DNA from: Paramoeba atlantica
Lineage: Eukaryota > Protista > Discosea
Length of the DNA stretch: 64,000 nt
NCBI GenBank assembly: GCA_977017575.1
Contig: CDRNVI010000144.1
Location: 186,001 to 250,000 of the forward strand
Reading direction: 5' to 3'
Each line of letters starts with the position of its first letter. The first letter of the stretch is position 1. Below, in pieces: positions 7,283 through 7,774 of this stretch. Under the pieces are notes generated by a model. That model was not told the DNA's origin. It did no database searches and saw only the letters and a program-made list of their open reading frames with translations. Position numbers and translations under genes: made by a program.

Positions 7283-7580
7283 GTCAGGAGAAGAGAATAT
7301 GTCATACTATTTTCGGTTTGCTCCTGGGATGGAGTCGATGGGACCTTTGTATCAACAGAGTTTTGTTCCTTCTTGTTCTCCTCTGGGAGGGGCAAATATT
7401 GGTGGGGGAAACCATTTTAAAGACTGTACCTTCAAGTTTTCAGAACCAAAAAAGAAGAAACAAAAGATTGAAGGAAAGGAGAACCTTGACAAAAGTGTCG
7501 GTGAATAATAAAAATTTTGATCACTTTATATCATCAAACTTTTCTCCAATAAAAAGATTCTTGTCCAAAAAAAAGTCAGG

Positions 7581-7696
7581 AAAATTGATGGCAGACGCAT
7601 CCTTCGTCCAGAGAAAAGTTCGAGTTGAGACGAGCCGAAGGCGAGTCGAGAACGAGAACTTTTCTCTGGACGAAGGATGCGTCTGCCATCAATTTT
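7581..7696. other. Perfect 41 bp inverted repeat with a 34 nt structured loop
   Basis: 7581-7621 (AAAATTGATGGCAGACGCATCCTTCGTCCAGAGAAAAGTTC) is the exact reverse complement of 7656-7696. Confidence 0.95.
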
Positions 7697-7774
7697 TTCG
7701 ACTTTTTTTTCAGGACTCGAACTTTTGTACCCGAAAAAAAGAAAAAAAAAAAGAAAAAGAAAAAGAAAAAAAAC

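Follow-up and report, generated by a model that had tools for sequence, protein, structure and literature searches.

A hairpin with tandem G·A mismatches and a C:G-closed triloop beside Crypton-type tyrosine recombinase genes in Paramoeba atlantica ribosomal DNA and in other organisms

Analysis of a 64-kb stretch of Paramoeba atlantica DNA (64,000 nucleotides, referred to here as the window) showed a long hairpin at the 3' end of a Crypton-type element, and the same tip signature was found beside Crypton recombinase genes of 29-49% identity in a protist-like relative, in beetles and in metagenomes. Judging from these sequences, the hairpin may be a conserved cis element of the Crypton that is folded when used, most likely as a recombinase recognition structure near the crossover, and we give this reading about an even chance of being right. 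The copy in the window is a fossil with a broken recombinase.

Structure of the hairpin and of its host element

The window consisted of ribosomal DNA (rDNA) on the minus strand, in two units with a very long spacer between them. The element was located in the rDNA spacer, upstream of the SSU after a purine-run spacer, and adjoined a tRNA-Lys gene. The features are listed below by their positions in the window.

1-807, 1130-1285 and 1496-3597, minus strand: first rDNA unit (LSU start, 5.8S and SSU, respectively)
5645-7733, plus strand: Crypton-type (tyrosine-recombinase-only) element, a 5'-truncated dead copy of about 2 kb
5737-6768, plus strand: recombinase piece 1, 343 aa, with the N-terminal domain and most of the catalytic domain
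6734-7282, plus strand: recombinase piece 2, in another frame, with ...SYTDPS... carrying the likely catalytic tyrosine, then a Pro/Ser-rich repeat
7095-7508, plus strand: recombinase piece 3, in the third frame, with the C-terminal motif ..DCTFKF..KKKK
7567-7710, no strand assigned: hairpin, whole inverted repeat, 144 bases
7581-7621, no strand assigned: left perfect arm, 41 nt
7622-7655, plus strand: asymmetric centre, 34 nt, with 3-bp helices separated by tandem G·A mismatches
7629-7647, plus strand: tip signature GAC-GA-GCC-GAA-GGC-GA-GTC, sole match of the signature scan in the window
7656-7696, no strand assigned: right perfect arm, 41 nt
7711-7733, plus strand: 3' tail of the element, beyond the hairpin base
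7775-7847, minus strand: tRNA-Lys(CTT), in the flank outside the element, its 3' end 42 nt from the element edge
49416-56239: second rDNA unit

The repeat finder gave hairpin arms at 7567-7626 and 7651-7710, of 60 nt each and 92% complementary, and the perfect palindrome, whose limits were set by which central segments invert without altering the sequence, measured 41 bp. Beyond a 3-nt mismatch, the stem extended outward as A8GTC / GACT8. The minimum-energy fold of the centre on the plus strand was TTC-GA-GTT-GA-GAC-GA-GCC, a GAA triloop and the mirror image opposite, with two more GA mismatches below the tip signature, and CGAG occurred five times on this strand. The GAA triloop of the tip had a C:G closing pair (GCC-GAA-GGC), which is the feature of GCGNAGC-class mini-hairpins, and the tip contained the mini-hairpin heptamer CCGAAGG, placed at 7631-7637. 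Folded as single-stranded DNA, the hairpin reached -66.7 kcal/mol, compared with -19.7 +/- 2.8 for 200 dinucleotide shuffles (z -16.6), none of which equalled it.

The coordinates and anatomy proposed by an earlier sequence-only reading were borne out by the repeat finder arms, the 41-bp perfect part and the minimum-energy fold. Its placing of the hairpin at the 3' end of the recombinase element also agreed with the homology to the element-free rDNA unit, which restarts at 7734. The GNA triloops and tandem G·A pairs that it took to stabilise folded single-stranded DNA are known stabilisers (PMC13037366, PMC3201870), and the exceptional stability of d(GNA) triloops requires a C:G closing pair (PMC3201870). 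The stem had further been described as engineered-looking; its perfection is not special, because relatives carry imperfect stems. Arm perfection was dismissed as a sign of selection, being uninformative where copies differ by only about 2.5% over a short region.

The hairpin started 59 nt past the last coding piece and ended at most 23 nt from the 3' edge of the element. In the 3' tail, positions 7715-7726 (ACTCGAACTTTT) were the complement of left-arm positions 7614-7625, and in full-length copies the GGACTCG motif of the tail had two further occurrences in the 5' region. The left edge of the element is approximate (5640-5670). Unit-to-unit comparison showed that the element was present in the first rDNA unit of the window and missing from the unit at 52644-64000. 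The matching parts of the two units (1-5650 with 52644-58301, and 7734-11637 with 59881-63998) were about 52.6 kb apart.

A word search for relatives of the recombinase gave two proteins, P0001 and P0002, while a profile word search returned only P0001, and a scan of viral contigs found no relative. P0001, encoded on an ENA contig of 7.5 kb with similar purine-run DNA, is an intact protein of 521 aa with 49% identity. P0002 has 400 aa and 33% identity, and its family is large; those members that carry names come from beetles, with the annotation Tyr-recombinase / ZMYM2-like-QRICH1 domain proteins. The relatives found via P0002 bore precomputed PF12012 matches, several being named ZMYM2-like/QRICH1 C-terminal domain proteins, and both P0001 and P0002 exceeded the Pfam Phage_integrase cut-off.

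The sole coding content of 5645-7733 was a tyrosine recombinase split over three frames, with no other transposase and no reverse transcriptase. Piece 1, which shared 49% identity with P0001, matched DUF3504 (E 4e-6, 27.3 bits against a cut-off of 29.7) and Phage_integrase (E 7e-4) in Pfam, both under the curated cut-offs. The family profile gave weak matches to the catalytic domains of XerC, XerA, XerD and IntI4. The alignment with P0001 and P0002 and tblastn of all copies suggest that the frame changes near 6755, and the C-terminal motif of piece 3 corresponded to the NCVF motif of both relatives. In piece 1 the histidine of HxxR was replaced by Q (codon CAG at 6655), as in all six genomic copies. 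The catalytic R-H-R-Y was intact in P0001 and P0002 and in none of the six genomic copies, that of the window included (H to Q, and a frameshift before the tyrosine); the window element is therefore a dead Crypton member. The C-terminal extension carried a Pro/Ser-rich tandem repeat of 24 nt (8 residues) at 6855-7089, whose copy number varied among the six copies, and P0001 carried an analogous, unrelated repeat, SPRPEKQxLGVP.

No TIR or LTR was found on the element. As a candidate for the short direct repeats (4-6 bp) that mark the two ends of Cryptons, GAAAA(G/A) was present at both junctions, where the flanks are purine-run spacer repeats and the motif is indistinguishable from chance. Direct repeats of 42-45 nt resembling att sites (5500-5544 and 7734-7778) were rejected as nonspecific, being purine-run spacer repeats.

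The long rDNA spacer contained other features. The tRNA genes for Thr, His and Gly were at 48026-49163, and two 5S genes were located at 18842-18960 and 42106-42224. In mid-spacer (26218-32415), a 193-bp satellite was repeated in tandem about 32 times, at 99.8% identity, within a block of 19% G+C. A MITE-like insertion of about 720 bp, with imperfect terminal inverted repeats of about 35 nt (CACAGCC.GATAGTG...), lay at 58907-59627 in the element-free rDNA unit and was absent from the element-bearing unit. Decayed fragments of a Crypton recombinase N-terminal domain were found on the minus strand at 45759-46330 and 47158-47352, with 44-54% identity to P0001; this family had at least eight near-identical fragment copies elsewhere, and most of the stops were TGA, consistent with C-to-T changes in decaying CG sites.

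Copies in the Paramoeba atlantica genome

A search of the 45.7-Mb assembly with the 159-nt hairpin region gave six matching loci. The recombinase gene was present beside the hairpin in all six, no solo copy was found, and the element-free rDNA unit lacked the hairpin too. The genome-wide check for solo, MITE-like hairpins proposed in the sequence-only reading thus turned up none. An independent foldback element or MITE, or a palindrome that arose by chance in the rDNA spacer, in either case unrelated to the recombinase, is very improbable as an explanation. The spacer does hold other small insertions, such as the one at 58907-59627, but equivalent hairpins occur beside distant recombinase genes in other organisms; the independent MITE or foldback was rejected on the lack of solo copies in 45.7 Mb, and the spacer palindrome on the absence of the hairpin from element-free units.

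All six copies occupied the same spacer position next to tRNA-Lys and shared the same inactivating defects, and they therefore represent one old, dead or dying insertion that was multiplied with the rDNA units. As descendants of one insertion, their co-occurrence of hairpin and recombinase is not independent evidence. The idea of the hairpin as recombinase-linked folded DNA accordingly stood in part: the hairpin tip was found conserved across families and free in orientation, but the six copies do not show joint transposition with the recombinase. The assembly search found no copies of the element at other genomic sites, only diverged fragments of related families elsewhere. rDNA units were present on at least seven contigs of the assembly, and at least eight further units were without the element. 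Four of the six copies were full-length, with about 270 bp more at the 5' end containing repeated TGACGT...ATTGG and GGACTCG motifs, and two (the window copy and one other) were 5'-truncated. Among the fragments, those resembling the recombinase only over residues ~40-190 (L033-L049) had no hairpin within 1.5 kb, and being decayed are little informative. A closer recombinase fragment, on C143 near 190 kb, was truncated on both sides.

Two of the six copies differed in the hairpin itself. In the C177 copy the hairpin was that of the window except for an exact inversion of the central segment (flip/flop), and the breakpoints could lie anywhere inside the perfect arms; in the C137 copy the tip was deleted and the right arm had diverged. 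The flip dates after the death of the recombinase, and it was therefore made by host replication or repair, or by a recombinase acting in trans. It is no evidence that the element's own enzyme inverted the tip. Terminal hairpins of parvoviruses and poxviruses are the ends of linear genomes and flip and flop by replication. The exact inversion of the asymmetric tip between C177 and the other copies resembles this, but the window hairpin lies in the interior of a chromosome contig, between spacer DNA and a tRNA gene, and the flip is in a dead copy. Such changes also bear on the possibility that the palindrome is a by-product of transposition chemistry (a hairpin-capped end copied open) or a neutral terminal palindrome. 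Flip/flop and tip deletions show that the palindrome is dynamic even in dead copies, and element edges lie near it, but a by-product would not retain the same tandem-GA, C:G-closed GNA tip across unrelated stems, and we consider this origin unlikely.

A second recombinase-only element, unrelated to the window family, was found at C144:59-67 kb with an intact 418-aa frame (L075, 1437-2693), adjoining a tRNA-Ser gene. It spanned 1265-2990 of L075 (C144:60264-61990), and a second copy of 99% identity was present at C170:69951-71078. A 165-nt hairpin with GAG/AGA purine mismatches stood before the gene (z -11.4). L076, a cousin of L075 with 50% identity, had a hairpin that holds GGTC-GA-G...C-GA-GACC. 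Taken with the window hairpin, these two suggest that structured, purine-mismatched hairpins are general for the recombinase-only elements of this genome. The end of the L075 element was about 20-60 nt from the 3' end of tRNA-Ser; like the window element, it thus follows closely on a tRNA gene that is read from the other strand.

The sequence CGAGACGAAGGCGAG, one base off the 15-mer of the window tip, had eight exact sites in the genome: C9:399439, 401588 and 403729; C5:114686; C14:407597 and 432803; C92:50661; and C94:49180. The three C9 sites were about 2.14 kb apart. The eight sites were not near matches to either recombinase family, and the reversed-pattern control gave 0.

Hairpins beside the recombinase genes of relatives

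An imperfect hairpin was found 56 nt past the stop codon of the P0001 gene (L054), with a tandem mismatch AAC-TC-GTG / CAC-TC-GTT low in the stem. The signature used for scanning consisted of an outer stem, GA·GA (TC·TC on the other strand), a stem of 3-5 bp and a triloop. It was present at L055, L060 (the same as L061), L062 (Zophobas morio genome), L063, L068 and L073, with unrelated stem sequences, and at these six loci the signature hairpin was the strongest or near-strongest fold adjoining the recombinase gene. These were the 6 matches in 54.5 kb of non-window Crypton loci, and 100 dinucleotide-preserving shuffles of the same sequence gave a mean of 0.19 matches with a maximum of 2. No match was found in the same loci reversed, nor in 59 kb of other loci from the genome used as controls, and the only match in the window was the target hairpin. 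Since L063, L068 and L073 were fetched once the signature was fixed, they form an independent test, with 3 matches in about 28 kb.

The triloops of the seven tips, read on the purine strand, were GAA in four (window, L062, L063 and L068) and GCA, GTA and TTT in the others; the closing pair was C:G in all seven and the loop was GNA in six. Exact heptamers were CCGAAGG in the window and GCGAAGC in L062 and L068. Structural conservation, which the sequence-only reading had named as a check, was thereby found: the tandem GA mismatch and the C:G-closed, mostly GNA triloop are kept across unrelated hairpin sequences. The strict signature was present in only about half of some 14 Crypton loci, several of which lie on contigs with too little flank to judge. 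L065 and L066 had long hairpins beside the gene and lacked the strict signature, the L059 hairpin was homologous to that of L063 but had lost the tip, and L068 and L073 had decayed recombinase genes, with 560-850 bp between the hairpin and the homology. L059, an insect-type contig, also had a separate palindrome at 1960-2154, directly upstream of the Crypton copy; its arms are 90 nt long, it folds at -73 kcal/mol, and it is probably another foldback element.

Four families (window, L062, L063 and L073) had the purine strand in sense orientation and four (L054, L055, L060 and L068) had it in antisense, and both tip orientations occurred within the Paramoeba atlantica genome, given the exact flip in C177. 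Orientation is thus free, which argues for a role at the DNA level and against one in RNA. The hairpin was 3' of the gene in the window, L054 and L060 (56-100 nt past the stop) and upstream of it in L062, L063 and L055. A transcriptional or RNA-level element, namely a terminator, an mRNA stabiliser or a silencing hairpin RNA, would suit the 3' position in the first three loci and the runs of T and A that flank the stem. We regard it as improbable, because the hairpin precedes the gene in the other three, because the 4:4 orientation would leave the sense transcript of half of the families with destabilising U·C mismatches, and because the C:G-closed GNA triloop is a DNA-specific stabiliser (PMC13037366). 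The hairpin region also matched no Rfam family at gathering thresholds.

If the unit is circular or tandemly repeated, a hairpin before the gene and one after it are in the same place. L063 (ENA OGXW01022558.1) had a 55-nt terminal overlap (1-55 with 2054-2108), giving a unit of 2053 bp; its reads join the 3' end of the Crypton to the 5' end, and it therefore represents a circular form or a tandem array. The ends of L055 overlapped by 14 nt, and when they were joined the stem lengthened to about 58 nt per arm. L058 was circularly permuted with respect to L059 and L063. As defined from two or three copies only, the element edges were at most 23 nt outside the stem base at the 3' end in the window, about 30 nt outside it in L059, and inside the right arm in L058; L058 and L059, two integrated copies of one family, open at different points. 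For the window family, a hypothetical circle junction was built from both ends of one full-length copy and folded. A split hairpin was rejected for this family, as joining did not lengthen the hairpin and gave only a 7-bp inverted repeat, AACTTTT...AAAAGTT, which is a weak lead as a core-site candidate.

The self-closing contigs also bear on the main rival explanation, in which the hairpin serves not as the recombination site but as a priming signal or complementary-strand origin, for an element with a single-stranded (circular) stage. GCGNAGC/CCGAAGG mini-hairpins mark single-stranded DNA replication or priming signals in phage G4 and in ssiA of a broad-host-range plasmid, the ssiA heptamer CCGAAGG being the same as in the window (PMC13037366). 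The conserved features are those that stabilise single-stranded DNA, and the self-closing contigs fit a circular form. The likeness to mini-hairpin DNA covers the C:G-closed GNA triloop and the heptamers of the window, L062 and L068, but here the triloop caps a stem of 40-60 bp in a transposon that encodes no primase or Rep. The element encodes no replication protein, and this explanation does not require the hairpin to be close to the element edges; we judge it rather unlikely, though the likeliest of the rivals.

Proposed role of the hairpin and known systems

Under the preferred reading, in which the hairpin is a recombinase recognition structure, it would belong to the DUF3504-type Crypton as an integral cis-acting part and would act as folded DNA, either as a cruciform or as a single strand. 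Use in the folded state is suggested because the G·A pairs and the triloop exist only in a folded strand and not in plain duplex. The purine strand would fold into a long stem with at least one 5'-CGAG-3'/5'-CGAG-3' tandem G·A mismatch and a C:G-closed, mostly GNA triloop. The recombinase would most likely recognise the shape and not a fixed sequence, and the crossover between element and target would fall within a few tens of bases of the stem base. The sequences show the structure, its exclusive tie to the recombinase gene, its conservation across families, its free orientation and its closeness to the edges. That it folds in vivo, that the recombinase recognises it and where the strands are exchanged are what we infer.

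Folded single-stranded sites of bacterial tyrosine recombinases are known from integron attC (IntI) and CTX phage attP(+) (XerCD). These are imperfect hairpins that conserve their structure, together with particular mismatched or extrahelical positions, and not their sequence. The seven tips likewise share GA·GA and a C:G-closed triloop on differing stems and go with a recombinase of the tyrosine class; attC and CTX-phage attP appear to be the nearest functional analogues. The differences are another recombinase lineage, a eukaryotic host, and tandem G·A pairs with a GNA triloop in place of extrahelical bases. A wider proposal, which is possible but doubtful, is that in Cryptons from protists to insects a single strand or cruciform folds to a G·A-zippered, GNA-capped hairpin that is read by the recombinase and re-copied in each cycle, with flips of the tip; if true, this would be a eukaryotic counterpart of the single-stranded recombination of integron attC and CTX phage.

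Subterminal hairpins are also found in HUH-nuclease transposons, namely IS200/IS605 and Helitron (at the 3' end in the latter). Replitrons are HUH-nuclease transposons with a subterminal hairpin as well (PMC10288648). The position a few tens of bases inside one end, and a hairpin thought to be read on single-stranded DNA, are points in common with the present element; however, the enzymes of those transposons are HUH nucleases and not tyrosine recombinases, and their hairpins are far shorter (about 16-20 bp).

Among described Cryptons, the window element resembles CryptonA and CryptonI in being about 2 kb long and having only a tyrosine recombinase with DUF3504/Phage_integrase similarity (PMC3212892; Glomhopper, PMC13465315), in having no reverse transcriptase, LTRs or classical TIRs, and in that, among named proteins, its homologue P0002 is closest to Crypton-like proteins of beetles. 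Kojima and Jurka (2011) described animal Cryptons as having no terminal repeats and mentioned no hairpin or palindrome (PMC3212892), and the terminal repeats of fungal Cryptons have been described only as 'variable or poorly conserved' (PMC3212892, PMC13465315). In the Crypton literature open to full-text search, nothing relevant was found on a hairpin, stem-loop or palindrome. Unlike CryptonA and CryptonI, the elements described here have a subterminal hairpin with a conserved tip as their most constant non-coding feature, and the window copy has a long Pro/Ser-repeat C-terminal extension.

To our knowledge, no class of eukaryotic DNA transposons is less well understood than the Cryptons; their ends are hard to find, and the model of a Crypton circle is only an analogy to bacterial elements. 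A conserved hairpin near the element edge that is defined by shape would give a practical landmark for Crypton annotation and a well-defined substrate on which a Crypton recombinase could be assayed biochemically for the first time. It would also make concrete the hypothesis that folded DNA serves the tyrosine-recombinase transposons of eukaryotes, as it serves integrons and CTX phage. The Crypton recombinase domain has been domesticated several times in animals (ZMYM2-4, QRICH1, KCTD1), and the hairpin could hint at the type of DNA that the domesticated DUF3504 proteins once bound.
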